A stretch of 64,000 nt of DNA from Phaeosaccion multiseriatum. Its lineage: Eukaryota > Protista > Ochrophyta, other classes. Numbering within the stretch: position 1 is the first letter of the stretch; each line of letters begins with the position of its first letter. The position numbers and the translations under genes were made by a program. The stretch covers positions 4,402,001 to 4,466,000 of the forward strand of contig OZ218950.1 in NCBI GenBank assembly GCA_965112735.1, in the 5' to 3' direction. The notes under the pieces are model-generated. The model made no database searches and was not told the DNA's origin. It saw nothing but the letters and a program-made list of their open reading frames with translations. Positions 4,145-61,391 of the stretch are shown here, one piece after another.

Positions 4145-4178
<34 letters not shown>

Positions 4179-28031: not shown

Positions 28032-31000
28032 TCACAGGAAGTCGAGCACGAGTTTGTCCGTTACGGCATCGGCCACCTTGGAGCAGATGGCGTTAAAGAG
28101 AGCGTCGCTCGCCCGTGCCCCCTGCGCGATTTTCTGAAACGCTTGCGCGAGATCTCCGCCCCCAAGAGCTGTCCGCACTGAGCAGCCTCCCGCAGTGGCG
28201 AGGACTTGAAGAGCCGCGTGAGAGGCGTATGCGCCAAAGGCAATGACGTCGGTCTTCATATCCGGGTGCGCAGTCCTCATGCTCGAGATGAAGGCTGCTG
28301 CAGCCACGGAGTCGTCCGCCCCTCCATCTGACATGAAAATGATGTGGGGTAGGGCTCCAGGCGGGGTTGCTGCGACCTGCAAGTAAGCTTCGTTCATCGC
28401 GGGAGCAAACGACGTCCCACGGCCGTGCATGGACAGACTCGCGGCGCTCGCCAATACATCAATCGGCTGCTGAGCGTATACAGTCCGGGCAATTGAATCG
28501 AACTGAATCACAGTCACGAGGTCTCGTCCGCCCTGATTCTTGCTTCGCGCAGAGAGGAAGCCCTCGTACGCCCTCACGAGGTCATACCACGGGTTCCCTG
28601 ACATGGATCCACTTTCGTCCAGCACAAAGACGAAGTGAATGCCCGGTGCGCGGGTAAGAGGGCGTGCTCCACCAACGCCATCATCCACCAAAGAGATGCT
28701 CTTGAGGTAACGGCCGACGTCCTGACCCTCCTCAGAAGTGGTGGTGCCAGAAGCCGCCGCCGCCTCCTCCCGCTTCTTGAGGCTCTTCGCGACGAGCCCC
28801 TCCATCTGTCTGTCCATGGCGGCAGTCGCAAGCGGGTCCACTTGGCAGTGCATCACGAGCAGCTTCTTGGCGATGACGAGGTCGAAGGCTTTCTTGAGGT
28901 CTAGGAGTGACTCCTTGCTCTTGTCTGGATGGTCGTCACTCACGACCACCCCGGGTGCGAGTCCGCTGGTGAAGACGGTTCCATGGCATGGGTTGTCGGT
29001 AAACAGGATGATGAATCTGGCGATGCCTTTCCAGTCGTCCCACTTGGCGACTCTCTTTAGCGCCCCAGCCACGTCTTCCGCGTCGTCCCTCCCTCCGCTC
29101 GGAGATTGGATAGTCTTGAGCTGCTGAATGAACTCGTTTGCATCCGTCGTGAAGTGAGAGGAGACGTTGGCCCCACTCCCTTCGCCAGTACCCTCGGTCA
29201 CAAAATGTGTCTTCTCGTGCGTATCCCCGTAGTCCCGGAAGGCCAAGAAGGACAGACGGACTTCAAACTCTTGCTCAGGATGATGCTTGGTCACCTTGGA
29301 AGCAATTGAGTTGTCCCCTACCACAATGCTGTCCACCTGGGCCACCAGCTGGCGGTGAAGCCCCGCCATGCTTCCCGTCACGTCAATGACAAAGGCGAGG
29401 TCAATGACGATCTTGCCAGGGTCGCTGCCCGAGCAAATCATGAGCTCTCGATCTGTCCTCAGATGGTTGTGCAGCTGCTCAAAGCGAGACCAGCGCTCCT
29501 GCCCCAGCAGGTGCTCCACATCGATTTGATCTGCTCCACGCGCCACCAGGCACAGCTGCTCCCACTCCTTAAACAGGGCTCGAGAGCACGATGCCGCGTC
29601 GTCGTCCCCAGTCTGCTCTCTTCCTGCCGCCGCAGCGTCCATTTGGTCACACAAGCTCTTGAGAGCCTCGGGTATCGCGCTCGACAGGGCCGCCGCAATC
29701 CAGCGACCATAGAGCTGCTGTACGTTGGCCTGCTCCATGCCCACCGCGATACCAATCACATCAATGTCCCTACTCTGACACTCTGCCTGCGCCTGCGTGA
29801 GTCGCGCAGCACTGCTGCTGTGGCCGTCGGTCAGGACGAAGATCTTGGAAGGATGCTGCTGCCAAGATAGCAGGGACATGGCCAGCGAAACAGCCTCTGC
29901 GTCGCACGTGCGCCTCTGCTCGCGTGGGCGGAGGCGCGCAAACAAGGACAACGCCGCCCCAGGGCTCCACTCCTGTCCGGGCGCCTTGACGAGCTGCGCC
30001 TCCTTGCCGAAGAGAATCACATATGTGTCCTCAATGCCCACCTCCTGCAGCGCACCCAAGAGGACCACCAAGGCCTCGAGCGAGCTCTGCAGCAAATGAC
30101 CTTCCATCGACTGACTAATGTCCACTGCAATCGCCACGGCGTACTGACGCTGTCCGCCACAAGTCCGAGCAGAGAAAAACTTTTTGTAGGAAAAGTCTGT
30201 GCTCACGGCCTTGATGAGCCCAGGGAGGTCGAGCTGGCTGCCCTTGAAGGCGGCCTGTCTCCTCGTGAAGCGGTTGAAGGGGAAGAGAAGAGTCTCCATC
30301 ACAGCTGCGGTCTCTCCGATCACGCCTTGGAGCTTGCAGCTCAGGGTGATCCACTGCTCCATTGCCTGCTGTGCATCGGCAGGGAAGCGGCTCTCGAGCT
30401 CCACACACAAGGCATTGCAGCGACTGGGGAAGTCTTGTAGCGTGGCGCTGACCTGATCTTCGTCCTCGCCCAGCAGCGACGAAACCTGCCCGGCTCTGTC
30501 CATCTTCACTAGCGCCCGATCACGAAGGTGCTTCACTCGTTCCTCGATGCGGGCCTCCCCGCCGGGGGAGCTGACCGAGTACATGAGTGGGGGCCGTGCC
30601 ACTCCCTCTTGGAGAGCTGTCCCAATGTCCAGTGGGCTCGAGTGCAGCTCGTAGAAGCGCATGCTCCCTCCAAAGTCTCGAGCACTCCCAGAGAGGTGTT
30701 GCAGATCAGGCTCAAAGATGCTGCTGCTCTTGGTTGGTGGCCTGCCTCCGGCGCTCTTGGTTGGTGGCGCCGCGGCAGCCTTTACAGCGCCGTAGTCCTC
30801 CCGCATCACTCGCTTGAGGGATCGCGTCACCATCTGGTGCAGAACAAGCGGCAGAGCGCCCCCTTCCTCCCGCCTCGCCTTGTCCAGCAGCGTCGCCTGC
30901 GAGATGGGAAAGTAGAGCTCATTCGAGATAATCTTGAGCTTGGCATCCAGCCTCCCTGCAAACTCCCGCTCGCTGTCCTGGCGTGTGTGGAGGATGGCAA

Positions 31001-31915
31001 GCTCCACCTCGCACTGAGTCCGCAGCTCGACGAGGTCGAGCTCATTGCCGCTCATGTCCTGTCCTTTGCGGGGAGCAATCTCCTGGGAGAGGGCGTCCGT
31101 GATGACGATGGAGATGCGGCGCTGGAAGGGCTCTCGAGGGGCCACGAACAAGCCCCCCTGAGGGTTGGACCAAATCGCTTTGAGGCAGCTGCCGATGTGA
31201 GAGCTCTCGTCGTGAGAGAAGCCCGCCAGCACTCGCTCCCCTACACGCAGTGAAAAGGGCTCGTCCATATGCTTGAGGATGCGGCCTCTGTTGGCGTCCC
31301 CCAACGTGGCCACGGCGAAGCGGCACTCGAGGCGGCGAAGCACCTCCATAAGCACCGTCACCATCTCCGCCACGCTGTTACTCACTCGTGTCATGGAGCC
31401 GCTATTGTCCACAAGCACCGCCCACTCAATCTCCACGGGCTCTCCTGCTCGCTCCAGGCTGTCTTGGCTCACAATGGCACGGCAGTCCGAGAGTAAGTCC
31501 TTGACGAGCATAGCGAGGCCCTCGCTCTCCGCCAGCAGCTGGTATGTCCACTTCTCCTGCCTACCCTTGGACGCACGGAACTCAGATGGCAGCACCAGCA
31601 CGCGCGGATCATGCTGTAGCCTAATGTTCCCGGCTCTCTCAAACGTTTCGGTAATGTCCTGGTCACCCATCTTGCGCTCGATGTCCTTGGCGCCCAGCTG
31701 CAAGCTGACCTTGGCGAGCTGCATCTCTGCATACTCTTGCTCCTCAATCTCGGAAGCGTTGACAATCTTGAGGTCGCTCCTGTGAATGGGGGGGGGGCAG
31801 GATCGACACAGTCAAGGCGTCGTGCTCAGGATGGAGAGCATACAGGACATTATTGCTCACACACACGCACCCACACGCACACGCACGCACGCACATGCAC
31901 GCACGCACACGCACG

Positions 31916-31989
<74 letters not shown>

Positions 31990-34900
31990 TGGAAGGACCC
32001 TTACCGGCTGATCTTCTTGTTCTTCTTCTTTCTGGCCGGTTCGGTCGGCCTCGTGCTCGGCAGTGGGGGGTGCTGGCGCTCAGGAGGCCTCACGAGGGTC
32101 TTTGGGTTGGGAGCAAATTCGACTGTCTTTGGCGCCTCGAATGACGCATCGACAGGAGTGGACCTGGCCGGGAGCGCTCTGGGTAGCACATCATCCATGT
32201 CTAGCTGAATCTCGCCCAGTTTCACATGATTGACCTTCACCGATGTATTCGCGGCGGCGGCCTGCCTCTCCTCCCACAGGGAGCTCACCAGCTCGTTAAC
32301 ATCGTCCATATCTCCCCCCTCCTCCCCACCCCAGTCTCGCTGCCCCCCCCGCTCCTTCACCCCCCAGTTCTGCATGGCCGAGTTCTCGAAGGGGTCATCC
32401 TCATCCTCTTCTGGTGCTTGTTCAAAGGCCCGCAGCGCCTTCTGCTTGTCACTCGGATCGTCCAGCGGCACCTCAAAGTCTGCCTCCTTGTCCATTCTCT
32501 TGCCACTCGACACGTTCAGCCTCATCTCGTCGGGAATGTTGAGGGACTGGATGCTCTTCTCAAGCTTGCCCATCTCCCTCGCCAGCAGCCCCTCGGCTGT
32601 CCTGCTGCCCAGCTTCTTGAGACGCTGCTGGATCGCGTCCATCACCAGCAAATTGGACAGCCCTACCCGCACGAAGTCGCTCGTAACGCTGCGCTGCTCT
32701 TCGCCCTCGTCTTCCTGCCGCTGTCCCATCTCCCAGAAGCTAGCGTAGCCTTGTCTCCAACTCTTGCTCGACTCCGTGAGAGCAGGGATGCCTCGGCTGA
32801 GCTGCGCGCCCCCCACTGGATCGGACAAGCCTGGCGCTGAGGGAGCCTCTCCCAATGGAGTGGTGTCCGAGGCCACGAGGCAGTCCATCCTTAGTTCCAC
32901 CTTGGCATTGTCGAGCTGAAGCTTGGCACTCTCCAGAGCCCTCTTTGCCTCGTCCAGCTGCTGCTCATCACTCCTCGATGCTTGGTACGCCTGTTTGTGT
33001 ATTCGGGGACCGGGTACAGGATGGGTACATGAGTCCACCTTAACAGCAAGACGCCGTATACTGTTGGTTTGACCTCCTCCTCCTTCTTCTCCTCCTCGTC
33101 CTCCCCCGCTCCCTTATCCTCCTCCTCTTTCTCCTCCGCCTTCTCTTCCTCTTCCTCTTTCTCCTCCTCATCCTCTTCCTCCTCCTCCTCCTCCTCCTCC
33201 TCCTCCTCCTCCTCCTCCTCCTCCTCTTCCTCCTCCCCCTCCTCCCCATGCTTCCTCCCCTCACCTGAACACCGAGTCGCATACCCTCTTGCATCCCCTT
33301 GGACACCTCAAACGCGTGGTCCTGGAACTGCACCTTGGAGGACCCAATCAGAATAGCCGCAGAGTCCCCTATAGCTGCCTCAGGGGGGGCATGGCTCACA
33401 TCACCAAAGGTGGTACTTGCCATCTCACCCCTCCTCTCCCCCGGGAGTGACGCATTGGCGGCCTCTCCAGGCCCAGCGCTGCAGGGCGTCTCTCCTTCAG
33501 CCGCTCGAGCAGTGCCCTGAGAAGGACAACCGCGCTCTCCCTGCCGAGCTCCAAGGAACTCCCCCCCCCCGGCCCCTCCTGCCCGTCCAGCAGAGGTCGG
33601 TGCGATTCCACCCAGATCCTGGCCGTAACCCTGGTCCTGACTCTGGCCCTGATCCTGACCCTGACCCTGACCCTCACCCTCACCCTGCCCCTCACCCTGG
33701 CCCTTACCCTGACCCTGGCCCTGACCTTCACCCTGACCCTGACCCTGACCCTGACCCTTACCCTGACCCTGACCCTGACCGTGGTCCTGATCTTGACCCT
33801 GACCCTGACCCTGACCCTGACCCTGACCAAGCCCCTGGCCCTGACCCTGACTCTGACCCTGGGCCTCACCCTGACCCTGACCCTGGCCCTCACCCTGGCC
33901 CTGACCTTGGCCCTGACCCTGACCCTGACCCTGACCCTGACCCTGGCCCTGACCCTGACCCTGACCCTGACCCTGGCCCTGGCCCTCACCCTGACCCTGA
34001 CCAAGCCCCTCACCCTGACCCTGACCCTGACCCTGATCCTGACCCTGACCGTGGTCCTGACCTTGACCCTGACCCTGACAATGACCCTGACCCTGACCCT
34101 GACCCTGACCCTGACCCTGACCCTGACCCTGACCCTGACTCTGACCCTGGGCCTCACCCTGACCCTGACCCTGACCCTGGCCCTCACCCTGGCCCTGACC
34201 TTGGCCCTGACCCTGACCCTGACCCTGACCCTGACCCTGACCCTGACCCTGACCCTGACCGTGGCCCTGATCTTGACCCTGACCCTGACCCTGACCCTGA
34301 CCAAGCCCCTGACCCTGATCCTGACCCTGACCCTGACCAAGCCCCTGACCCTGACCCTGACCCTGACTCTGACCCTGGCCCTCACCCTGGCCCTGACCCT
34401 GACCGTGGCCCTGATCTTGACCCTGACCCTGACCCTGACCCTGACCCTGACCCTGACCCTGACCCTGACCCTGACCCTGACCCTGACCCTGACCAAGCCC
34501 CTGACCCTGGCCCTGATCCTGATCCTGACCCTGACCTTGACCCTGGCCCTGACCCTGACCCTGACCCTGACCCTGGCCCTCACCCTGGCCCTGACTCTGA
34601 CTCTGACCCTGGGCCTCACCCTGGCCTTGACGTTCATCTGGTGAGGTAGAGCATCTCCCCGTGGCAACCCCCTGATCTGCTGACTCCTTTTCCCAAGAGG
34701 CTCTGCAGAGAAGGTCATGGTCCTCCAGACGCATCAAGCCTGCCACCACGAGGAAGGAGCCGACGCTCCTCGCCAGGGCGTCGTGGCCTTGCGAGGCTTC
34801 ACCTCTCGACTGCAGCACCAGAGAGATGCCATGGGAGATGCTGCGCAACCCGGCGACAGCGATGCGACGATCAGAGGTTAGATTGTCGTCCCCACTCAAG

Positions 34901-37900
34901 CCGTCCAGCATCATGGAGAGACCGATGATGTGATTGAGACCCCGGGCCTGTGCTCCATCCCCATCCGGAGACGGGGTTGCTGTGGTAGCTGCTAGCTCCC
35001 CGATTTCTGCGATGAAGGCGGTGGAGCCTGCGTGAAGGCTCTCGAGCTTCTTCCCGACGGGCAGTCCATACTGGAACCACGCCGCCAGACGAGTCGGAGT
35101 GGAGGCCAGGATCCCAGAGGAGCAGTCCCGAACAAAGTCTGCCAGGCCCTGGAGCTGCTCGCGCTGGAGGCCTTGACCAGAAGGCAGCGAGGAAGCGACG
35201 CACAGATAGGCCTCGAGGGTAGCTTCCACACTTTGGCCGAGTGCTACCGCCGGTTGGTGGTGTCCATGCTCGACGAGGAGGAGGAAGGCCTGCGCTACGT
35301 CCACCGCGGGGTGCTCCTTCTCCTGCGAGGACAGCCACTTCAAGCCTTGCTGCAGGAGAGCCTGCACTTGCAGGGGGCTGACGTCCGAGGGCAGATACGC
35401 AAGCTTCTTCATGGTGTCGCTCTTCAGCAGCTCCACAGTGCAGCGCACCCGCCGTTGGAGAGCTCCGCTGGACTTGCGTGGGCTGCACTCCGTCAGCACA
35501 TCAATCAAAGGCTTCATCACCGCCTCCAGCGTGCTGTTGCTCAAAGTACTCCCACTACGGGCGACAGCGTACAGATGCCGAAGTGCCTCTGCCTTGCGCT
35601 TAGTCACCTCTATCTCCTCGTCGGTCATGAAGACTCCCGCGCCGACAAACTCCACCACAGCGGACAGAGTCCCATCAAAGTCAAAGGCAGACCCACCGAC
35701 CAAGGCTTCGCACAGCTGCGTATGATTCGCTGCGAATGTGACGATCGCCTTCTCCGGGGGCTTGATCGTCTGCTGCTGGGATGGGTCCAGCGCCTGTGGT
35801 GGGTGGAGCGCCCTCGTCAGCTCGGCAAAGCAGTCCGAGGTCCGCAGCGCCGCGAGCACCTCCTCTAACTCCGCTGACGTTTTGCCTCCGCTGAGAAGAA
35901 GCAGCAGATCGACCACACGCTCTGGTGATAGCTCGGCCTTCACCCCCTTCTCGTAAGCATCATCGGCAGCCCAAGCCTCGCGCAGGATGCCCCATGTGGG
36001 CCGCAGACCTGCCGCCTTGAGAAAGTGACGCACAGGGCGGCGATGGTACCGTACAGCGCACGAAGAGGCAGTCGCTGCAGTCTCACGCATCCCCTCCACC
36101 AGGTCTACAAACCAGGGGCGGCGGGAAGAGGAGGGGGGATATTGCTCAAGGACAGATAAGAGCGCATCCAGCACGATGTGCCCCTCCTGCTGCCTCTCCT
36201 TTCTCCACTCGGCGATGACTTGGCGATGGGGGTTCCACTTGCCGAAGAGAACAGTCCTCAGCACACTCCGCCACTCCTCCGAGTCCACAGCGGGCTGCTG
36301 AAGGGCACGGAGGAGACTGCACGAGGGCGGATCCAGACTGGCCAACATGTCCTCTTCGTTGAGGAGCTCCAGCCAAGCAGCAGGCCCCGACGCACAGGAA
36401 GACGCGCTCGGCGAAAGGGGAAGCTGAAGCTGCCCATAGGCAGCCAACAGAGGCCCCGCACTTACAGCCGCCTTGGACTCTGGACTGATCACTTCCAGCG
36501 ACAACTCCAGGGGGGCTCTTCCTCCGCCCCCGTCAGCCGCAATGCCAGCAAAGGTCTGCCAGCAGTGCTGAGACGGGTGTCCTGTACAGTATCAACAATC
36601 AAACAAATACAAAAGTCATACGGTAGTCGTTCGGATACAATAGCGGATCCCGCCGGCCATGAAATGGCAGGTCCTTTAGTCAAGTCGACCTCGTCCCCCA
36701 GTCCTGGCACTCAAACTCGACGCTGCTAAAGGAACATTACTCAGCCCGGCTACACACGCAAAACTTACCTCCCATATGCTTCCAGCGCTTCACTGCCTTC
36801 GCAGTGACTGGGAGCTGCAGCAGACTCGAGCAGGCTTGGTTCACCTCTGTTGGAGTCACCGCAACACTGCACAGAACCTCGCCGATCATCTCGTCGAGCA
36901 CAGTGGGCTTCTCCCCGTTGGCGAGTCGCTCCTCGACGATGGTACTCAGAGCCTCCCTCGCCGCTGTCGTTGACGAAGACTCCACGAGGCCTCTACGTGC
37001 CGCCTCCAGCACACTCTCACCGCACGCTGCGGCGTCCTCATCACTCAGTGACGGCAGGCCGGTGACAAGCCGCACCACCGAGGGCTGCTGGCCCAGCTGC
37101 AGGAGCTTAGATGCGCTGTGCCCCCCCGCCTCCACAACAGGAGCACTCCCGCCTTTCAGCCCATCAAAGTCCATCGCTGCGGAAGCATCCTCGCCGTGGA
37201 GAATACACCCAACCAGGCATGCTGCTGCAATTACTCTCTCTTCGTCTGGCCGAGATGTGCGAAGGAGTTCGATGGCAGCCAAAGGGTGCTGCCCCAGGGC
37301 ACTGATCGGCTGTAGTGGTGACGAGGGCGCGGCAGGAGGAGAGAGCGTGACCAGTAGAGACTTGCTGCCACCCTCTCGCACGGCGCCATCGGGGCCAACG
37401 CTACATTCTCCGGGGACCGCGAAGGTGATGATCGCATGGTGCATGCCCACGGGAGCAGCAGCAGTTGCGCCAGCAGCAGATGCAGGAGTCGCGCCGTCCA
37501 CGGTGGCCCGCAGCTTCCAGAAGTGGTGATCCCGGCCTTCCTTCCCTCTCTTGGGAGCCAGGTCAAGGAAGTCCTCACTAGACTCTTTCTCTGTGCACTT
37601 CTCGTCCTTGTAGCGCGTAAGGCTCAGAGCTGCGCCGGGTGTCGGGAGACCGCTTGCCCCAGAGAGAAGATGTGGGTTGCTGTGGGCGTCCAGACGGTAG
37701 CGTAGTGAAGCACCGCCTTCGTTGGTGCTGGCGAACATCGCCTCGTACGTATGCTCCTCTCCATGGACGGGAGCGAGACTGACGGCTGTAACTTCCTTGT
37801 GCTCCTTCTTCTTCTTCCTCTTCCCCGTGCTGGCGTCAGAGCACGCCACGAAAGCGAGGCGAGAGCCTTTCAGGCGGATATTGTATTCGCACAGGAGGGT

Positions 37901-40900
37901 CGGCCGCCGCTGGCTGTTGACTTGGAAAAAGAAGCTGTCCTTACCCGCCGCCAGACAACTCTTCCTCACGAGCACACTCTTCCTCACGAGCACCTCTGTG
38001 CGCGCAGTATGGCCAGGCTGCACCACCACTTCTGAAATGGCGCTGTCTGCAAACTCCACGTCTGATGAGCCCTGAAGCGAGACAATAGTCTCAATGTCTC
38101 CCATGCTCTTCAACTCCACCGGGACTCGCACAGGCTCCAGCGAGCCGCTGGTCTTAGCTTGGCGTAGGTCCACCTCCACAACGGAAGTAGCCTTTGCCGA
38201 CATGTAAACCCCTCCGCTTCGCACAGTCAGGATAATGTGCTCGTCCCGCGTGCCCCCAATCTTCGCGCCAACCTTGAAGTCTTTGGAGCCAGAGCTGTCT
38301 ACAGATTTGCTCAGGTACTCGAAGCGAATGCGCCGCGACGCTCCAGGAGGCACAGCACCACTCGCAGGATGGATTGAAATCCTCCCTCGCTCTCCTCCCC
38401 CTCCTCCTCCTCCACCTCCTTCTCCTCCTCCTCCACCTCCTCCTCTTCTAGGTCCAGAGGCCGAAGAGGTAGGCACCGACAGCTCAAAGGGCATCGGCAC
38501 TGCGGAGTGGTTGACCAGCCGCAGATGGCGACTGCATGTCTCCTCCCTCTCGCCGTCAGGGATCTCCACGTCGGGCATCTGCAGGTCCATCACAATGCTT
38601 GACGCACCGACGGGCAGCAGAAGCTCTCCTTGCCCCCCACTGCCCCCCCCATTGGCGGACGATATCTCCAGTTGAACGTGGCCGGCGATGCCTGCGAACC
38701 TGTCTCTGCCGTCTTCGGTTGTAAAGTGAAGGGGCACTCTACGCTTCTGACCTGGCTGGACTGAAACGCTGCCGCCTCCCTTCAGACGCAGATTCCTCTC
38801 CTGACCTCGCAGGGCTAGCCACTTCATTGAAGCATGGAGGGCAGACGATCCTTCCAGCCCTTCGTGGAGGAGCTCCAGCTCCCGTTGTGGAAAGTGCCCC
38901 CGCCTCAAAAGGTTGGCATGAAGTCTGATGACTCCCATGTGAAGGCCATGGGGGAAAACACCGCCCTCTGACTGCGCCGAAGCCGCTGCTGACGCCACAT
39001 CCACCTTGAGAGCTTTTGCCGCTGGTCGGCATGGAATGGCGAGGAGCTGCCTCCCCTCCAGTGGAGCGATGGTCTCACCCAGCTCGCTGACGTTATCTCC
39101 CTCCTCCTCCTCTTCAATCAAGGCGTAGCAGCTCTCTAGCAGAGACCCACGGACCGGGACACGCAGCACATCCTTGCTGCTGCCGAATGCGATGACGACG
39201 TGGCTGGCGATGACGCGCGGCATATTCCCGGAGTCAGCAGTGTCTACGAGCAGGCTCAGCGGCAGTCTCGAGTGCGGCTTGAGGTAGAGGGAGAAGCTGT
39301 CTCGCTCCTCTGCGGACGTTGATGACACAAAGCTGACAGGCGCCGCTCCCGATGCTGCATCCTCCTGGATCTTGGCCTTGACCCACACGCCAATGTGCCC
39401 ATCGTTGACAAGGAGAAGGGCTTGGCGCCGCTCCTCACCTAGCGGGACTCCAATCAGACAGTGCCCAAAGTTAATGGCGCACGGTTCCACCCGCGCAGAG
39501 ATGGGTGCGATGATGCACCGGACGAGAACGTCGGTGCACGCCGCCACTTCGTTGCCGAATGCCTCGTCTCGCAGCTCCAGCTTCACATGGAAGGAGTGCT
39601 CACCAGGTGTCAAGGCCGTACTGAGGCTGAAGGACACACTGGGTGACTCGAAGGGTCCTACTCGGAAGGCTGACGCTGGGCTAAGCTGCAGTGGGAAGGT
39701 TGCCTTCGTGAGCCCGTGGGCGGCCGCTGCGCTCTCCCCGGCCGCAACTGCTAGCACGGGGACTGCCTGAAGCTTCAGCCTCCTGTCCATCTCATTGACG
39801 AGCTGCAGGCTCCTCGTCTCTGTCCACGGTGCATCTCGCTGCTGGACGGTTCCGAGGTCCATCACCACTACGGGCGGCTGCAGCGATGGCTCACCCCCCG
39901 CCCCTGCTGCGCTGATCTTGACGACAAAGGAAGAGAGCGCCATGTCTGCTCCGCTGAAGGGATTCGCCAGAGTAAGCGCGTCGCCTCGCTCCTGCAAGTC
40001 CTTCTCCTGCTTGGCACGCTGCCTCGACGCATCCAGGCAGGCGAAGCGATGGTTGCGCCTTCTGATCAGAACATGCACCGCGCGTAAGATCCTATCCAGC
40101 TCCCTCTGCTTCGCAGCGATATGCATCTTCTCCACGAAACGCACTCTCGCCCCCCCCTTCCAAGCGTCGAGCACCCTCCTGGCGGACGATTCGTGCTGCT
40201 GAACCGTGCGGCGTTCTCTCATCTGCGTCAAGTCCAAGGCGCTCGAGCAGCAGATTTGGACTCCGAGGCTCAGGAAAGCCGTCACCGCGACATGGGAGCC
40301 AATTACTTCCAAGATCAAGCGACGATTGACCCGAAGCAGTCGCATAGCCTGTTTGAGCTCCTCCCCTGCTTCGACGGTGATGATGGTGCTAGTCGTGTCG
40401 TCCAGGAAGGCCTCTGGACACTCGACAGATCTCAGTGCGTGCCCCTCTTTCCACTCCTGAACCATCCGCTTTCGAATTTCTCTCATATCTTGCGTAAGAG
40501 TCAGCATGTCGCTCTCAATCTTGAAGCAAAGCTCTCCTCCGTGCTTCCCTCGAGCGGCCTCGTCGTCCAAGTTGCTACAGTCAGCACCATCGCTCTCGAC
40601 GATGGCCTCCAGCTCCCCCAAGTCTGTGGAGGCCGTCACCTCCTCCATCTTGGCCCTGAGGCGCGTGAGATTGCTCCAAAGGACACTCCCTTCGAGTGCC
40701 TGCCGAGCCCGCGTGCTGTCTTCCCTCATCTTCTCTTCCATCTGCCCGCTGTATAGGGCTGGGTCTTCCACGTGTTCTTTCGGGCGATAGGATGGCGCCG
40801 GCCTTACTCTCTGAGAGATGCGCAGTATCTGCTGGAGGCGATCCTCCGCGACCCGGCGGGGTGATTGAGTAGTACAACTAAAGTCATCCGCGGCATTCAC

Positions 40901-43900
40901 ATCAGGAGCAGGCTTGGGCTCGTACTCCATATACTCGCGCTCCTCCGCTTGCGCGACGAAGTAGGGGCTGTTACTATGGGGCTGCGATACTCGTTCGGCG
41001 TTCCAGTAGCATCCCTCCCATCCGTAGCGCTTTAGGACGCGTATCGTGCACTTCGTTTGCGCTTTGTCGGCACTCGCGAGCCCGAATATGCTCTTGGTGG
41101 AGTCCCACCATCCGCCCCATCTTTTCTTGCCCTCGACTGCTATGGCAAAATCGATCAACGCCGGAGGCTCGGTCAGGCAAGCATACGGGACAAAGACTCG
41201 CAGGCTATGTGGATGAGTGACCTCGACTCTGGTTCGGTGAGTGTCACGACTCAGAGCTTCGGTCGGCTGCTTGTCGATCCTGCCACGGTCTTGAAGCGTG
41301 ATGTGTACAGCCACGCCCGCGGGCCTCGCCTCAAAGTACTTGCCAATGACGGGCCTTGCCTCTGTCCGACATGACTGGAGGAGGTCTCGAAGCATCTTGT
41401 TGACGAAGCGCTTGTCCTGGGCAGCGTCGATCCTTCTGCGCCTCTCTTCCTCCTCGTCGCTGGCTGCTGACTCCTCCTCCCCGACAGCCGGTGCTGCTCC
41501 TCCGCCCCGCACACGTGCTGCTCCTCCGCCCTGCACACGCTCCTCCTCGTTCTGAGCAGCGTCCATCTCTTCCTCCTCGCCGCTGGCTGCTGACTCCTCC
41601 TCCCCGACAGCCGGTGCTGTTCCTTCGACCTGCACATGCTCCTCCTTGTTCTGAACAGCGTCCATCTCTTCCTCCTCGTCGCTGGCTGCTGACTCCTCCT
41701 CCCCGACTGCCGGTGCTGCTCCTTCGACCTGCACACGCTCCTCCTTGTTCTGAACAGCGTCCATCTCTTCCTCCTCGTCGCTGGCTGCTGACTCCTCCTC
41801 CCCGACTGCCGGTGCTGTTCCTTCGACCTGCACATGCTCCTCCTTGTTCTGAACAGCGTCCATCTCTTCCTCCTCGTCGCTGGCTGCTGACTCCTCCTCC
41901 CCGACTGCCGGTGCTGCTCCTTCGACCTGCACACGCTCCTCCTTGTTCTCAGCAGCGTCCGTCTTTTCCTCCTCGTCGCTGGCTGCTGCGTCCGCTTCTT
42001 CTGCTTGTTGCGGTGTGGCAGAGGACTTTCTCTTCACGAGACCGGAATCTGCCATTTGGAAGAGGGCAGCCACACCTTGCTCCACGAGGGCGGCAACGGT
42101 GCCTCGTTCACACTCCCACTCGGACAGTTTGTCCCTGTATCTTTGCTCGTCTTCTCTGGAGCGCTTGAGGTATTCGCCGTACTTCCGCTCCACTCCTTGA
42201 ATCTTCTTCCTTGTCTGTTCGTCCCTCGCTGCGATTCGCTTCTCCAAGACATCCTTCAAGGAGCACAGGACCCTCTCCGCCGCACGCCCCAAGTCCTCCG
42301 CGCAGCCTGCAATCAACATCGAGGGCCTCTGCGGCAAGGCGCTGGAGCTACTCGCGGCGTGCTTCCAAAATGATTGAACGATGCGCTGTGCAAAGGCGTC
42401 CTCTGCATCAAGCACCTTCTGCAGAAGAGGGAAGCCGTCCGTGTCCATCTGCTGGGCATCGCTAAGCGTGGAGAAGAGCGCCGAGACGGACTCGCGGCAG
42501 GCAGCGTAGTGCTCCTCCAGCATGGGGCAGCACACATCGACGCGGAACGACGCCAGCATGAGGAGGTCGAGGACGTCGCTTACGTCTTGCACCCCGAGGC
42601 ACAGCAAGTCCGCCATTGTCTGCGGGACAGAGAGATGATGTATCATCTCCAAGCCCTGTCCTCCTCCTCCCAAGACGGCTTGCTGCCCTCGGATGGCCTT
42701 TACGAGTGTAGCGTAGGGCGACCCCCCTCCTGCGCTTCTGGTGTTGACGAGATCCGCCACGAGCACATGCCGCAGGTCGAGGCTTGGAGAGGGCGCTGCC
42801 TCCCCCCCTCCCTCCTCTGCGGGCAGCGGCACCTTTTGCAGCACATCTTCTTCTTCGAGTGGTCCCAAACGAGCTCTCGTCTCCTCAAACGCAGCTCGAA
42901 TCGCTCTGCTCTGCATGTGAAGCAGCTCCTGCGTAAGCGCTTGCACCACTTCCTCGACATGCTGCGCCAGCTCATCCTGAGACTCTTGCCCTCCTGTCAT
43001 TTCCGTCATCACATCGCCCAAGCTCTGCACCGCTTGGCCTTCCAGCAGCAAACACAGATCCTTTACGCCCTCCATCCTATCATTCACCGCACTGAAATGC
43101 TCAAGCGCGCTCCTCTTGTCTCTGATCACAGCGAAGTGCTCTCTGTCCTCGCCACCTCCGGTGTCCTTGCCTGTCAACCGGACCACCAGGAGGGAGCCCA
43201 GGCAGTGTGAGAGCTGTGCAAGCTGCTCCAGCGCCTTGGATCCCTTGATTCTCGGCGTGAAGAGCCGCGCTTCGCACTTTGCGCCTCCGAAGATGGGCAC
43301 TAGGGTCTGCTTGACCAAGAGATGGGCCACGAAGGATGGGCCAAGGAGGGTTTCATCGTCCAGTAACGAAACGGCCTGCTGGAGGGAGTCGATGACCTCG
43401 AAAGGCGAGCTGGCGACTCCGTATGCAGCGTGGAAGAACGAGCCAAGGAGGGACTGCGAGACAGACCCAAACTGCGCGTAGAGGCGGTCGCTCTCCTCCA
43501 GTAGCTCGTGCGCCTCGAGGCTCAGCAAGAAGGTGTCACCTCGTCTCCTCAGCCAGGAGCCGAAGGCCTCAATGTCCCTGCTCAGGCTGGCTGCACACAG
43601 CTGCTTGGCCTGCACACTGGACAGCAGAGTGTACATGCTGTTCGCAGCGTACGTGCTGATGCACCGCGACTGCTTCCGCACTGACCACTGCGCTCGACCA
43701 TCAAGCTCCACGCCGTGCTGACTCCTCCTCCCTGATGCTGCTGCTCCATCCGCCACAGCAGCAGCCACGTCTTCGAGCTTGACCACCGCTGTCAACACGG
43801 CAGAGGCCTTATCGTGAAGCAGCTCCATGCTGGCAGTGTCCTCCCCGCGCACATGAGCAAACAGAGCGCCCACGTCCTGCATGAGGTCCGGGACGATGGC

Positions 43901-45048
43901 CAAGGCCTGCTCGTGGAATGAGCGCATGGCGGGCCCCAGTGAGTAAGCGGAGCGCACAAAGCCGAGCATGGCCGAGCTGGCGTTGCGCAGAGTCGCGAGG
44001 GCCACCTTCATCACGTCGAGGAGGTGGAACAGCTTCCTACCACAGGGCCCGCTGCGCTTCCTCGCAGCAGAGGGCTCCAAGTCCGCCTCGAGGAGCTGCG
44101 CGGCCTCCTCCACTAGCTCCAGCGCTTCACGGGCTCGCTCGGATGAGTCTCGCAGTGTAGCCTCGTCAAGCCTGGACAGGTCCTCGAGACGCTCAAACTC
44201 GCTGTACATGGCTGCGCTCAGCTCTTCTGGGCCGTCTTCCCAAGCATCGCCACCCCCATCTGCACCGACAGTGCAGAAAGCTCTGAGAAGGAGGCCCTGC
44301 AGCGTCTTGGCCGTTGCCGCCGGCTCTTTCCGCTGACGGTCACCGTCCTCCGACGACTTCTTTCGCTTCCCCTTGGCCTTCTTCTTCAGCTCCTGCACAG
44401 ATTTCCTGAGAGTCTTGACTTCTTCTGCAATTTCTTCGCTTCCTGGACCTTCGATGCAACCTTTCAAGGCATTGATGCGCTCTTCCTTTTCCTCGATCTC
44501 TTTCTCGAGCGACTTCTTGCTGACCCCAGGCGATCCTCCTCCCTTAACAAATCCCTCCAGCTCCTGGACCATCGTCTGCGTGAAGGCAGTGTGGCAGCCG
44601 CGGAGCATGCAGAGAGCGAGGGGGCACTGAAGGGGTATCCAATCGCCCACGGAGCCGACGAGGCCCGAGGCGTACACCCTCATGTCGTTGTCCGCCTCTT
44701 GCCTCGAGTAGACCAGGGAGTTGAGCACCTTGGTCAGGAACAACATCAGATCCTTGAGGTAGGGCACCATTGCCTGTCTCGACTCCTCATCCACAAGGCT
44801 GTGGTCCGTGGAGTCTACACCGAGCTCACTTGCTTGGAAAAGAGACTCCCAGGGAGGCAGTGTCGGCATGTCGCTCGCTGCAGAGGTTCCCAGCAAGAGA
44901 CGGCTGGAGAGGATGGACTCCGCTCGCTGCTCGAGCTTCATGGCGTGGCGCACCAGCTCGACGCAATTGGGGGCGGCAAGGAGGACCACGTCCGACGGCC
45001 TGAGGCTGACCAGCCCCGAAGATCGAAGGCACTCCCCACCGGGGATGC

Positions 45049-45088
<40 letters not shown>

Positions 45089-48000
45089 ACCGCTGCTGTG
45101 GGCCACGCACGGCCCACGGCCTAACACTCCCACCACTTCTATCAGGCGCTGCCGCCTCCGCTGCAGATCTTGCATGTGGACGAAGGAGAGGTGCAGCGGC
45201 GTGCGGCGCACGAGGTGTTGGTTGCGGTCCATGAAGTTCGGTGGGCCTTGCGGAGGGGAGCCTCCTACTTCTTGGCGGATGGAGAAGGGCAAAGCCACCT
45301 CCTCGGGCTGTGCGAGGAGCCTCTGCACGTGCCCATCAAGGAGAGTGGAGGTGCGCTTCGCCACGATTCCCTGCAGCAAGGCCGCTTCCGCCTGCTCCAG
45401 GCCCGTTGTCGACATGTCGGTCAGTGAGCAGCCCTCGCACTGCACCACGCGGTCAAGCTCGGGGATGCAGAGGAAGTTCTGCAAGTCCCGTGCCCTTCTG
45501 TCCTCCTGGCCCTTCATCTGATGTCCATTCCTGAGCCTGTCCAGCAGGAATAGCATCTGACTCACTGCCGACCGCTCCATGCGGATGCGCACTAGTCTGG
45601 ACGAGGTGTCATCGAGGGCCGCTGCGGCGGGCATGCCCTGTCCCGTGGGGTCGCCTGACGGGTTTGGATGTGAAGGGGAGAGAGAGGGGGAGGATAAATG
45701 GGTTTGCGACGAACGAGGGAAAGGCCCACGGGGGTTGACTTTACATACCTACGAAGACTCGAAGCTTGTGCCGCTGCTCTGCTGCGTCTTCTTCCACCAC
45801 GTCCACTCCCTCCTGTGGCACATTCTTCCACAGCTGCTCTTCGCACAGCTTGGGGAAGTCAGCCACCCGCTTCTTGAGCGCTCGAAGGCGAGGAGGCAGT
45901 CGCATGAAGAGGGGATCTGAGTCCTCCGATGCCTGTCGGAACAAGGCCAGCTCGCGCTCTCGGTCCGCGATCCAGCATCTCTCCTCCTTCAGCTCCTTGT
46001 CCACCTGGTGCTTGCTGGGGACCAAGACCTCGGGATCGGAGAGCTTGGAGCGCTTGTCCTGGAGCTTGCCGAGTCTCTTCCGCGTTGTCATGGCCAAGAA
46101 AAAGCAGCCCGAGTCATGAGCGTTCTTGAGCAGTACCTCCATGAGCTTCATGACACTCTGGAGCCCATCCTTCATCTCTGCTCGCTCCCTCGCCGCAGCC
46201 TGCTGCGCCTTCTCTGCTGCCTCTGCCGATGTCTCGTCGCCTCTGCTCGTTGGAGCGTGGGCAATGGCTGAGTGCAGATTGAGCCTGTACTTCTCGATTG
46301 TCGCCAGCGGCACCTCTACTTTCACAAGCAGCTCGTGCATCCTCAACGCCATACCCTCCAAGCTGCTCCGCAGACAATCCTTCTCGAGCAGCACCTCTCC
46401 ATTGTGGGTCTCCAACATCGAGAGCAGCTGCTCCACTACCTCTTCCCACTCCGCTGCGACATGCCCTGAGGCAGCCTCGTACATGCGGGACACTTCCCTC
46501 TCCTCGCCCCTCAGCTGGACGAGCCTCTCTGGAATGAAGGTGGCGATGAAGAGAAGAACATTCTCGAGGCTGGCAAGGAGATGAGCTGCCGCCTGCGCAC
46601 TTGCCATCCTCGTCGTGTCCACAGCAGTGCCTTCCTGCCACTTGTCGAGGACTGCCTTGACGTGGCTGAACAGCCTCGGCTCTCTCTCCACACAGCGAAG
46701 CAGGTGCACCCTGGCGGAGTTGCTTTCGGGGATACCTCTGCGGATGGCATCCTCGCTGTCCGAGAGGCGTTTGTGAGGGTCGACCTGGCTCAGCAACAAA
46801 TGCAGCACCTGTACATGTTGCTCCGTCTCCTCACTGAAAGGCCAGGCTGGTGACGAGACTATGAACAACTTGAGTTCCGCCAGTGTGGTGATGAGCCGCG
46901 TGGAGAAGTGGCTCCCTCCCAACTCCCCTTCCGTGGTCCCCTCGATGGTCCGATACAGTCGTACTCGAACCTCATTGAGCTTCTCCACAATACTTATTTG
47001 AGACGGGCAGAAGGGCTGGACACACAGCGGCAGAGGCGCGCCGGGAGAGGGCGGCGACAAACTCGAGAGTCCTGCCATCGTCGCAGCGATAGCGCCTTGT
47101 AGCCCTGAGATGGTGCAATCTTCCATCAGCTCCACCACCTTGCTGCGCTCCTGCTCTCGGTCTCGGACTTGGAGGCGGAGCCGCGCGAGGTCCTCGATTG
47201 CGTCCATGGCCGTGAGCTGCCGTCCACATCGCTCTTCAGCGTCCCTTGGGAGCAGGCGGTAGACACTCATGCTCCCGTCTTCACTAAGATGCAAGACCAG
47301 GGCTGTGACAGAGAAATCGTCCTTCCCGTCGAACAAGAAGATCACATGTGGCGCTCCGGGCTGCATGTGCTCTAGCAGAGAAGAGGAGACAGGCATGAAG
47401 GTGCGATGCAGTCTTGCCGACGAGCCCTCCTCCTTCAGGATGGAACTGGTGCCGAACGAACACCACAGTGCCACGTCCAACAGAGGGCACCTGAGGTCAT
47501 GCTCTGTCAGAACCTCCAGAGCCTCTACAAAGTTTGATGGTCGCATGCGGTTCACGGCTCCTCCACTCTGAAGTGCGTCCGTCCTGTCCAAGCCGTCCAT
47601 GCGACTCCAGTCTGCCAGTAGAGACGCGACTTTGCCTGCCGCCACGGCAGTGATGACGTGCTCGATCGTTCTCCACTCGGGGGACTCCAGCTGCTCTTGC
47701 ACCCCCTCCAGACCGCCAGACCATGCTGCTTCCATAGCAATCTCCCTCCTCTCCTCCAGCTCGCTTCCGTGCTCCCTCAGCGAAGCCACTTCTGCCTTTA
47801 GCTCCTGCTCCTGGATCTCAAGTTCTTTCTCCAAATTCTTGTCAGCCTTCTGTGGCCATTTACCCAACAAGCTCCAGCTCGTCTCCTTGCGGCACTCCGC
47901 GAGCTCCTTCTGCTTCTCACCCAGCCTGGCCTCCGCTCTAGTGGTTTCCCTTGCGTTTGTAGCCAAGTCCTCCTCCACCTGGCTCAGACTCTCCAGAGCT

Positions 48001-51000
48001 TGCGGAAGTTGTCGAGCAAGGCCTTCCACCATCGGGGTCAGCTCAAACTGCAGCTTGGCAGTGCACATCCCAATCTCCTGCTGCAGAAGCATTTCCATGA
48101 CCTTGGAGTCGCTCCCTCTCATCTCTCCTCCCTCTTGAGGCAGGCGCATGAGGCCTCTCCAGGACACGCCCAGCCACCGGAGAGAGGCGGCCAGCTGCTG
48201 CAAGCGGGGGGAGAGGCTGCCGGCTGCTGAACCCTCCTCTTGAATCAGCAAAGTGAGGAGCCGGCTAATGTCCTCCTCGGCAGAAAGGAAGGGGGCGACC
48301 ATGTCCCGCTGGAGGATGTACATCCTCGTGCCCTGTGCGTCACGCATGGGCTGCGACACTTGCTCATAGAGCAGCCGCAGACGTTGTCCACTCAAAAGTC
48401 GGACCCAGGGCAGAAGCTTCTCCTCCACGACGAACAGGCTCTCCAGCAGGGTACGGCCGGGCACCAGTAGGTCAGCGGTGTCTTGCTTCTTGGTGCCATC
48501 TGCGGGAGCGAGGAGGCCCAGCAAATGCCTCAGTCGGCTGCAGATGGAGCTGACTCTCCTCAGCTCGAGCTCCCGGACCTGGGCGTCGACAATGGACACC
48601 TGCTTGGTGTACGTCAGGAGGGTGGCGAGGAGGCTATTGGCGAGCGCCGGCGCGTGCTGCATGCACGACCCAGCGTCACTCTGGGACAACAAGCCGTCGA
48701 GGCTCAGTCGAGAGAGAAGCGCGACCCTGTCCTGCTCGACAGAGTCCTCGTGCGGCGCGGCAGAGCCAAAGCTGTCCATGTGCTGGGTGATCGCAACCTC
48801 GATGGCTTCCGCCTCGCCTGCTCCAAGGTCCAGCGGAACAAGCTTTCCTCGGACAAGGTAGCGAGCAGCCGTGCAGAACTGCGCGGTGGGTGCGCTCATG
48901 AGTGCCCTCGCTACGCCTCGGAGAACGAAGGACTCTGCCGCCTGGAGCGCTCGTGCAAGGGCGAGGCGATGAACTTGCCACGGCTCCCCTCGCTCCGATG
49001 CACTAATCACGGGCACCACGGGGAGCGATTCAGCCGCAACAGCTTGACTGCAGAGGAGTTGCACCAGCTTTCTCATCTGCCTCTCCGACGCCGCGAGGAT
49101 TCCGTGACCCGCCTCTCTCTGCATCGTGTCCTTGACACAGTCACAGTAGTTCCTCACGATTGCCCACACGAAGGCGTTCAAGGGGCTGACTCCTCTTCCT
49201 GCCGCTGCTGCTGCTGCTGGTGCTGGTGCTGCTGATTGGGTGGGCAGTTCACCACCCGTGCCGTTGCCCGGATGAAGCTCCATGAGGCGCGTTGCCGTGT
49301 CGATGGTGCGAAGCATGGTGCGGAAGGTGATCTGCACGTCCCCCACGAGATAAAACTCCTTTCGCCGAATGGAGTGCTTCGTGGCGGCATGCACCTCGAG
49401 CAGCAAGTGCACGAGCCTTTCCTTGCCCTCAATGTCGGGCAGCAGGCTGTACAGGATGGAGGCAATGTCGAGCTGAGCAAAAGCTTGCGCGCTACCGCTG
49501 GGCTCTGCTGCCAAGCCCTCGATGCCCACGTCCAACGGTGGCAGCCAAATGCGCACCATGCGATTCAGCAGCGCACTGGACAGCTTGTTGGAGCTGCAGC
49601 GACTGCTGTTGGCCGTCGCGAAGATGCGGAAGTCCGGATGAATGGAGTTGTCTGCCCTCCTGAGCTCCTCTCCATCCCCCTTCTCCAGCAGCGCCAGCAG
49701 CGGCGAGTCCTCAAAGAGCGAGTTGAGGCGCTCCACCACCTCACCTGGTGCGCTATCGATATTGTCGAGCATCACCCAGTGACCCTCTCGCATGGCCGTC
49801 ACGAGCTCGCTCTCCACGAATTCAAACACCAGCGTCGTCGGCTCTCTGCTCAACTCCTCCTCTCCTCTCCCCGCACCAGCTCCCAGGAGTAGTTCATCAA
49901 AGTCCGTCTGCAGCTGCTTCTGGAGGCGACGCCCGTTGTCTCGCACGCGATGATGCATATCTGCCAGCACGCCACCGTCGTACTCGCGACAACAGAGGCG
50001 CTCAAGACACTCACTGATCGTCCCTACCGCGGTGGCGACAGCCTCTTCGCCGCCGCTGCCCTGGCTGCTCCATGCCTCGACAGCCAACTTGATGGCCGTC
50101 TCGGTCTCTTGCAGCAAGTACTCCGCAGTCGCGTGCTGACCTTTGCGCTTGGCCTCCGCCGCAAGGAGGGGGCGAATGTTGACGAGGAGGAGCTGAGACG
50201 CGGCCTGCATCCGCAGCATACAGGCATGCCACATGCCCTTCTTGTGCTCTTTGACGCTGGTGGGTAGCAGCTGCCCAATGAGGTCGGACGTCTCCATCTC
50301 GTGCGTCATGGCCACCTCCACCAGACGCCTCTTGCACAGACGGGCAAGCTCCCGCACGATGCTGCTCTTGGCGCTCGCAGTGTCTCCCTCCAGCAACACC
50401 GCTCGCTTGCTTTGTGCGGCTGCTCCCAGAGCCTCGAGCAGCTGCACCGTGCGGTGGGAGTGCACCATAGCAACACCCGTCGCTCGTCCGTCCTCTCCTC
50501 TCTCCGTCTCCATCTCGCCTTGAGCCAAGTACACGGAGCCAATCCGAATCATGCCCGGCACAGAGTCGTCGATCTCGTCGGAGTGAGTCAGGTTGCGCAG
50601 TCGTGTAGACACCTGGAAAAACTCCGACCTGTCGATGACCTCCTGCACCCTGCTCTGGTTCTCTGCACTATGGAAGCGCCGGGCATACACCAGTGAGAGG
50701 AACTTGTTGAGAGCAAGGACGCGCACATCCGTGTCTCCCCCCTGCGGCTCTCCACCCACGTCGCCGGCTTTGTTGTAGAACCGAAAGTGGTCTTTCAAGT
50801 TGGCAGCATTGCTCTGGAGAATGTCCCGCAACTTGAGCAAGTCTCGTACGTTGAGCTCGTACGGAGCGCCTCGCAGTCCAATTTCTCTCTGAGACACGAG
50901 CTCCGCCACCTCGCAGTGCACTTGAAAGACAGCCTCGAGCTGCTCCGCTGTGATGACGCCCTCCTGCTGCTGCTCCGCCAACTCGCCTCCACTACTGTCT

Positions 51001-61096: not shown

Positions 61097-61391
61097 TGCC
61101 GGTTCTCTTTGGTCAGAGTGGTTCTATGCAAGGCTCAACACCAACACACCATTATTACGCAATAACAAAATCAAAGGTCACCCATCTTCGTATCTTTCTT
61201 TCACGTCAAGCAGAATCAGCACGGTCGCTCGCCATCTGTGATTTACTTTTATGTGGTCTCCCCACACTTGGTCTCCCGTACCAGTCGTTTTCTTAAGTAA
61301 GCCTTGCCCGTACGGGCACTGGCTCTTCCACCACCAAGGGCCACGTCCTGACCAGACTTCGCCGTCTCGTCAGCTGCAGCCACCAGATGTG

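Follow-up and report, generated by a model that had tools for sequence, protein, structure and literature searches.

Midasin (Rea1/Mdn1/MDN1) is treated as a single-copy, single-purpose motor. The ciliary ASH-array proteins consist almost wholly of ASH domains, with neither an AAA ring nor a VWA domain, and VWA8, a mitochondrial animal protein of about 1,900 amino acids (aa), combines AAA_5 modules with a C-terminal VWA domain; we know of no ASH array in VWA8. Here we describe a locus of Phaeosaccion multiseriatum (contig OZ218950.1, positions 4,402,001 to 4,466,000; this whole stretch of 64,000 nucleotides is referred to as the window), where an array of ASH-type immunoglobulin (Ig) domains lies in a midasin-like gene on the minus strand. 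To the reading that a chain of five or six ASH domains sits in the tail of a giant midasin-family AAA+ ATPase, which belongs to a conserved clade apart from the canonical midasins and works by a Rea1-like force mechanism, we give a probability of about two in three. The architecture consists of known parts in a new combination, conserved across distant eukaryotes, and a search of the literature found no publication on midasin-like proteins with ASH domains.

The window has a G+C content of ~60%, and long open frames follow each other in series on the minus strand from ~61100 down to 28035. The largest of these (36737-45634, 2,965 codons) is the open reading frame (ORF) that bears the array, and has a coding-like GC content by codon position (0.66/0.46/0.70). 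It opens with about 1,250 residues of linker, which are followed by acidic repeats, and we placed the ASH array at 39880-37328 (ORF residues 1919-2769). An earlier reading made from the letters alone (the sequence-only reading) had located the array at 37300-39900, a near-exact fit, and the peptides that it quoted were all found in this minus-strand ORF, at residues 1918-2548 (window 39883-37991):

39883, minus strand: quoted 13-aa peptide, aa 1918
39490, minus strand: quoted 14-aa peptide, aa 2049
38533, minus strand: quoted 16-aa peptide, aa 2368
38029, minus strand: quoted 13-aa peptide, aa 2536

The four units it listed are real, but its count was short, as the array has five or six and D6 was not listed. 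In the order of the protein, the units of the array and the segments beside them are:

39500..39880, minus strand: D1, ASH-type Ig domain (aa 1919-2045), hallmark ...DLGTV...TRSLQLVNE
39134..39499, minus strand: D2, ASH-type Ig domain (aa 2046-2167), hallmark INFGHCLIG...ALLLVNDG, second sandwich of the crop model described below
38816..39133, minus strand: acidic spacer between D2 and D3 (aa 2168-2273), disordered and poorly conserved
38600..38815, minus strand: D3, short beta-rich segment without the Asn hallmark (aa 2274-2345)
38180..38599, minus strand: D4, ASH-type Ig domain (aa 2346-2485), 16-aa hallmark
37862..38179, minus strand: D5 (aa 2486-2591), RVKNxGD in homologues, ELKSMGD in the window
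37328..37861, minus strand: D6 (aa 2592-2769), 13-aa hallmark, loop insertions specific to the window
36740..37300, minus strand: helical region after the array (aa 2779-2965), nine helices in the model

The hallmark was taken as an early (F/L)G, followed by h-x-h-x-N-x-(G/S/D) after strand B, and the array accordingly comprises five hallmark-bearing domains (D1, D2, D4, D5 and D6) and one beta-rich segment (D3). In the window itself the hallmark is present in D1, D2, D4 and D6, with the Asn of the motif being family-invariant; D5 has a Ser at the position where its homologues have the Asn, and D3 lacks the motif. The helical region after the array can be aligned with what follows in the brown-alga-like ORFs. 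The array domains were not detectable as mutual repeats by self-blastp, and hhalign among the six segments gave only a marginal match of D1 to D2 (E=0.003); their divergence is too great for mutual recognition.

The window's own sequence stayed below threshold for every Pfam model, the best being Cep192_D3 and Cep192_D6; D2 reached 24.4 bits for Cep192_D3 (E=3e-5, cut-off 27), and there were fainter matches to Cep192_D6, Ig_CFAP65_9th and FixG_C. A phmmer search of the region against PDB sequences returned only meaningless Gly-linker matches to single-chain variable fragment (scFv) constructs. An exhaustive HMMER search with residues 1900-2790 (891 aa) in a database of 1.84 billion representative proteins gave three true relatives only (E=9e-21, 4e-8 and 5e-4), to which a profile word search added four further relatives, and a scan of metagenome contigs with the first alignment gave 370 pattern matches, 0 of them confirmed. 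All of these relatives come from run assemblies or metagenomes as ORFs without annotation, and are collinear across the whole region at 23-33% identity. Orthologues scored above Pfam cut-offs on three of the units: ASH on D1 (orthologue P0001, aa 28-90, 28.3 bits, cut-off 27), HYDIN_VesB_CFA65-like_Ig on D2 (P0001, aa 136-222, 44.2 bits, cut-off 25.5) and on D4 (43.6 bits, cut-off 25.5), and Cep192_D3 (35 bits, cut-off 27) and Cep192_D6 (38.1 bits, cut-off 35), also on D4. D3 had no Pfam match and D5 none of its own. Across the family the Asn of h-x-h-x-N is invariant in D1, D2 and D4, as are G, R and N in D1 and N, G, L, Y and R in D6, and the AGIxG and PIG motifs of D3 are kept.

Family profiles were compared, purely by sequence, with all PDB chains: Chlamydomonas Hydin was matched by both the D1-D2 profile (residues 1641-1824, E=1.9e-9) and the D3-D6 profile (E=1.4e-16), with further matches to FAP65 (3.9e-9), mouse CFAP65 (3e-7), FAP74 (1e-6) and FAP81 (2e-3), and essentially nothing beyond ASH proteins. 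In profile A5 the strongest segment, positions 75-146 in D4, matched Hydin, FAP65, CFAP65 and FAP74. The array domains have their closest relatives among the Ig domains in Hydin, CFAP65 and CFAP74. Together with the collinear relatives and the invariant Asn residues, the Hydin matches put the pattern far outside chance.

The predicted fold agrees with this identity. A 257-residue crop covering D1 and D2 gave two clean sandwiches in AlphaFold, with a predicted local distance difference test score (pLDDT) of 72.8 and a predicted template-modelling score (pTM) of 0.60; D1 has eight strands, with pLDDT mostly 80-90, and D2 about 10, compared with the 7-9 strands of an ASH domain of about 100 residues. 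A longer model, of a 1,066-residue stretch with eight sequences, had a mean pLDDT of 44 and is usable for secondary structure and local 3Di matches only; it is all-beta at ORF residues 1923-2764 and all-helical afterwards. In this model D3-D6 are all-beta at low confidence only, D3 showing strands and D5 and D6 being all-beta, with D5 collinear with its homologues. The spacer between D2 and D3 has a pLDDT of 22-31 and hardly any secondary structure, and homologues align poorly over it. D4 contains a poly-Gly insert (38387-38446), encoded by a CTC repeat, which homologues do not have. In Foldseek searches of the PDB with both models, ASH-array chains of the central apparatus ranked first together with the SPD-2 domain of CEP192: the top 25 were chains of CFAP65, DLEC1, HYDIN, FAP65, FAP74 and FAP81 together with the CEP192 SPD-2 domain (9fh8 and 7ptb, E=5e-9 to 1e-8). 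Chaperone-usher proteins of the PapD type formed the next tier, and generic Ig arrays, titin among them, ranked far lower, the gap to the ASH arrays being about ten orders of magnitude. The sequence-only reading had named the units ASH/PapD-like and proposed AlphaFold and Foldseek as the check, with a fold other than a beta-sandwich array speaking against the idea; the translation gave a beta-sandwich pair with ASH neighbours, and family-profile matches, orthologue Pfam scores and predicted fold are three independent lines of evidence for that identity. A real chain of Hydin/CFAP65-type (ASH) beta-sandwich domains in this region is thus supported.

The order of an AAA_5 part, a long ORF, an ASH ORF and VWA ORFs recurred in all seven ASH-bearing assembly or metagenome loci (L001-L007) where their flanks were assembled far enough, and gene order was collinear with the window in L001-L003 and L005-L009. 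The shared order was found in Ectocarpus, five brown-alga-like assemblies, two metagenomic eukaryotes and the green alga Tetradesmus, and weakly in Rotaria. Among the 120 matches listed, the closest named AAA relatives came from Ectocarpus spp. (47-49% identity), and the locus in Ectocarpus runs collinear with that of the window, with D1 encoded just past the annotated partial protein. This D1 is 66-74% identical to the run-assembly ORFs, which marks the run assemblies as brown algae or their close kin. In Ectocarpus sp. 6 (CAXNAH020000015.1; L008, 18341-28340) the linker and the start of the array run on for at least 10 kb past the partial protein, and no gene has been called there. A metagenomic eukaryote of 42% G+C (L009) has the array downstream of the ring (A4 profile, E=3e-21; Pfam HYDIN Ig, 28.2 bits, cut-off 25.5). 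In Tetradesmus obliquus a D1-D2 homologue that keeps the hallmark residues (E=2.9e-14) lies between the AAA part and the adjoining VWA gene. Its coding stretch (CP126192.1; L010, 33973-35592) is inside the span of OEZ86_000084 and absent from the annotated protein, and the next gene carries VWA domains; the public Tetradesmus models probably split and truncate one giant gene. In the rotifer Rotaria sp. Silwood2 (L011, 12635-22577) a ring member is followed by a gene of 5,108 residues without a recorded Pfam match, which has a VWA-like stretch at its start and a weak ASH-like signal, and the Rotaria tail may be organised differently from the algal one. Gene callers split or truncated the family in every genome examined (Ectocarpus, Tetradesmus and Rotaria), which may be the reason why it escaped notice. 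A ciliary reading based on the distribution of homologues alone was dropped, as too few lineages are represented.

Around the array, the minus strand of the window carries the remaining parts of the predicted giant gene:

48827..57994, minus strand: ring of the midasin type, its six AAA_5 modules spread over four ORF pieces, with Pfam and PDB matches and Walker A motifs
41989..48826, minus strand: long linker from the AAA ring to the acidic repeats, with collinear homologue ORFs
41515..41988, minus strand: acidic 33-residue repeats (99 bp, 4.8 copies), counterpart of the D/E-rich region of midasin
32004..36591, minus strand: middle tail of uncertain exon structure, including Gly-Gln (GQ) and Arg/Lys low-complexity runs
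28035..31811, minus strand: C-terminal VWA cluster with four DxSxS MIDAS motifs and VWA, VWA_2, VWA_3 and VWA_4 matches

The upstream ORF pieces contain the six AAA_5 modules and AAA_lid_7, the midasin lid, and the AAA ORFs matched PDB midasins in collinear register (E=2e-113 and 3e-77), which is the six-AAA_5 make-up of a midasin. A frame change in the linker near 45744-45748 implies a short intron, and the linker is collinear with single ORFs of 2,381 and 2,748 aa in L001 and L005 and with the Ectocarpus locus (L008). Homology of the linker to that of Rea1/Mdn1 was not found at the sequence level, the 2,965-aa ORF matching no midasin chain at E<0.01. The copies of the acidic repeat match each other at 95% in Tandem Repeats Finder (TRF), and this high identity suggests that the D/E-rich region was recently expanded. 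After the repeats there are ~4,000 residues and four DxSxS VWA domains, compared with the single C-terminal MIDAS domain of canonical midasin. The start of the middle tail is weakly collinear with P0006 and P0008 (E=0.002), and its piece G matches L001 and L002. Within the tail, conservation is highest in the VWA cluster (36-41% identity to the homologous loci), its DxSxS motifs lying in a beta-strand context at window 31409, 30122, 29384 and 28619; the only PDB match of the VWA ORF was a weak one (E=9e-5) of the first Pfam-detected VWA (motif 30122) to the Rea1 MIDAS domain (6qt8).

The ORF pieces were searched separately. Homologues have single ORFs across the window's D/E junction, and because the array shares an ORF with the linker and the acidic repeats, homologue ORFs bridge the breaks and the order is conserved, all pieces probably form one polypeptide. 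The multi-exon gene would encode a protein of ~10,000 aa, in which an N-terminal extension is predicted to be followed by the ring of six AAA modules, the long linker and the acidic repeats, then by the ASH array and the helical region, and finally by low-complexity sequence and four MIDAS VWA domains. That the array lies inside a midasin-like tail, as the sequence-only reading had it, is borne out by the shared ORF, the AAA ORFs that match midasin and the conserved order.

Several low-complexity and flanking stretches of the window were also recorded. A run of ~170 ACCCTG hexamers (33610-34631), inside the minus-strand ORF piece 33043-36591, reads as a Gly-Gln run of ~340 residues, with which no homologue aligns; it could be coding low-complexity sequence or a stop-free intronic microsatellite. 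The same ORF piece ends in an Arg/Lys run read on the minus strand from a CCTCCT repeat (33073-33245), and an intron-like (CA)n microsatellite (31858-31986) sits exactly within the gap that separates two ORF pieces. Before the first Walker A motif of the ring there is a stop-free stretch of ~1,100 residues without a Pfam match (57764-61123), which could belong to the protein as a very long extension of its N-terminus, or else to another gene upstream. Elsewhere in the window are fragments of an aromatic amino-acid lyase in two frames, as in an intron-split gene (6925-8155, plus strand), a Sel1-repeat ORF (973-2007, minus strand) and a Laminin_G_3 ORF (2694-5930, minus strand), and Rfam gave nothing over the whole window. 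A bacterial origin from MoxR-VWA systems was rejected in view of the introns and microsatellites, the low-complexity runs and the homologues in eukaryotes.

A tree of the AAA5-6 part, made with a quick method and with fungi, fish and mussel only on the canonical side, placed the fungal, fish and mussel midasins apart from a clade that unites the window gene with Ectocarpus, Tetradesmus, Rotaria and some unnamed sequences. Between the two groups lie branches of 2.7 changes per column (support 100) and 0.77 changes per column (support 90). Mean identity was 26.8% between the two clades, 48.6% among the canonical midasins (46.5% for fish versus fungi) and 38.9% within the clade of the window gene, which itself was 27.8% identical to canonical midasins versus 39.7% to its own clade. 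With fungi and animals as the canonical sample, the gene thus falls into a clade separate from the ribosome-biogenesis midasins, not among their orthologues. The rotifer genes grouped with the algae, and fish and mussel with the fungi; bdelloid rotifers are known to acquire foreign genes. Since midasin is regarded as universal in eukaryotes and the rotifer gene sits with the algae, a distinct paralogous family is the simplest reading, and we infer from these comparisons that the gene is probably a paralogue and not the ribosome-biogenesis enzyme. The sequence-only reading had called the array the best clue to a function outside ribosome biogenesis; such a function is plausible, the AAA tree and the identity matrix being better evidence for it than the array.

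A mechanism for the protein can be proposed by analogy with Rea1/Mdn1, in which the ring would dock on a large assembly, the VWA/MIDAS domains would grip acidic ligands via a metal ion, and an ATP-driven movement of the linker would pull on the gripped ligands. The ASH array would then act as a semi-rigid extension and docking platform, which selects the partner or the site of action. The analysis shows what the domains are, how they are ordered and that they are conserved between lineages; force transmission of this kind may be expected from the likeness to Rea1/Mdn1, whereas a ciliary or centrosomal substrate is speculative. The axonemal kin of the array hint at cilia, which is suggestive, yet they also reflect which ASH proteins have solved structures, and a function outside ribosome biogenesis, perhaps a ciliary one, is reasonable but unproven.

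Several points weigh against the reading as a midasin-family ATPase of a separate clade with an ASH chain in its tail. The window's own sequence is below all Pfam cut-offs, and D3, D5 and D6 were assigned from a low-confidence model (pLDDT 35-60) and motifs. The joining of the ORF pieces relies on genomic sequence and homologues, and the pieces were searched one at a time. The canonical midasins in the tree are those of fungi and animals, none being from a stramenopile, a plant or the genome of the window gene itself, and the case for paralogy draws on a long branch, on the placement of rotifers, among which bdelloids take up foreign genes, and on textbook universality. That vertebrates and fungi seem to lack the clade is drawn only from the 120 matches listed in one length-limited search. 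Finally, ASH domains also occur in non-ciliary proteins, so that they do not fix the function.

The best surviving alternative gives the array a different role, as a rigid and purely passive spacer, which would hold ring and MIDAS domains at a set distance and have no binding partner of its own. Tandem Ig arrays are often rods, and array conservation between the window and the brown-alga-like genes is low (27-31% identity) and concentrated at core and hallmark positions. The number and order of the domains are nevertheless kept across very distant lineages, and the ASH arrays of Hydin, CFAP65 and CEP192 are established interaction scaffolds; a mere spacer is unlikely.

Rather less likely still is the most specific proposal, that of an ancient second midasin-type motor, shared by stramenopiles, green algae and some animals, whose ASH array would dock on microtubule-based, centriolar or axonemal structures while its four MIDAS domains would extract or load components, making it a ribosome-independent extractor of assembly factors.

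It is also doubtful that the gene is the sole orthologous midasin of its genome, inflated by lineage-specific insertions (the ASH array and extra VWA domains) and still stripping assembly factors from the pre-60S particle. The AAA ring is unmistakably of the midasin type and collinear with Mdn1, the VWA part comes after an acidic region as it does in midasin, the Rea1 MIDAS domain was the only PDB match of the VWA ORF, and the canonical midasins compared came from fungi and animals, not from a stramenopile or green alga in which the two might be seen to co-exist. Yet identity to fungal and animal midasins is just 26-30%, compared with 41-50% among these mutually, the branch is very long and well supported and has rotifer genes on its algal side, the linker has no detectable similarity to solved linkers, and there are four MIDAS motifs, not one.

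That the tail is a reading artefact, with the ORF pieces being separate neighbouring genes for an AAA ATPase, an ASH protein and a VWA protein, is very improbable. Stops and frame changes do separate the pieces, gene callers split them at every locus, and they were joined on genomic evidence, but one uninterrupted ORF of 2,965 codons holds array, linker-like sequence and acidic repeats, homologue ORFs cross the window's D/E break, order and strand are kept from stramenopiles to a green alga, and the gaps are short, one holding a (CA)n microsatellite as introns do. The weakest explanation, a coincidental ASH resemblance of generic Ig-like, fibronectin type III (FN3)-like or low-complexity motifs, could point to the sub-threshold Pfam scores of the window, the Gly-linker matches of phmmer and the failure of blastp to match the domains to each other, but is hardly credible when family profiles match a number of genuine ASH proteins (1e-6 to 1e-16) and essentially no other chains, orthologues exceed the curated cut-offs of four ASH-clan families, and Foldseek places generic Ig arrays such as titin some ten orders of magnitude lower.

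Compared with known systems, the CEP192/SPD-2 domain resembles the array in its two-domain beta-sandwich unit and differs in its unrelated protein context, and the family profiles matched no CEP192 chain at E<1. VWA8 shares the dynein/midasin-type AAA_5 modules and the VWA domain and is much shorter; no protein of that name was among the 120 best AAA matches listed, although its length was in range. The ciliary proteins Hydin, CFAP65/FAP65, CFAP74/FAP74, DLEC1/FAP81 and CFAP47/FAP47 have tandem Ig domains with the same FG...h-x-h-x-N...P..F hallmark, which are homologous to the array at the level of sequence profiles and provide its best structural matches. Unlike an ASH-only axonemal protein, the window gene would use its array as a module of ~850 aa in a mechano-enzyme of ~10,000 aa, amounting to <10% of a predicted protein that is dominated by AAA and VWA parts.

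Likeness to midasin lies in the six AAA_5 modules, which carry midasin lids, probably belong to a single chain and run in register with 6or5, 6hyp and 5jcs, and in the succession of ring, long linker, acidic region and metal-ion-dependent VWA domain. In contrast to midasin, the window protein is about twice as long, is only about 27% identical in AAA5-6, has a linker that is not recognisably homologous in sequence, has an insertion after the acidic repeats of five or six Ig domains of the ASH type and a helical region, and has four MIDAS motifs versus one; an ASH-clan Pfam family was present in 0 of the listed midasin fragments. Domain boundaries, orthologues in a brown-algal model and profiles that recognise the family now provide handles on these proteins, which we regard as a probable conserved sister family that kept the midasin ring and rebuilt its tail with Hydin-type Ig domains and four MIDAS domains, and which, if this is true, would be a second giant mechano-enzyme beside midasin.

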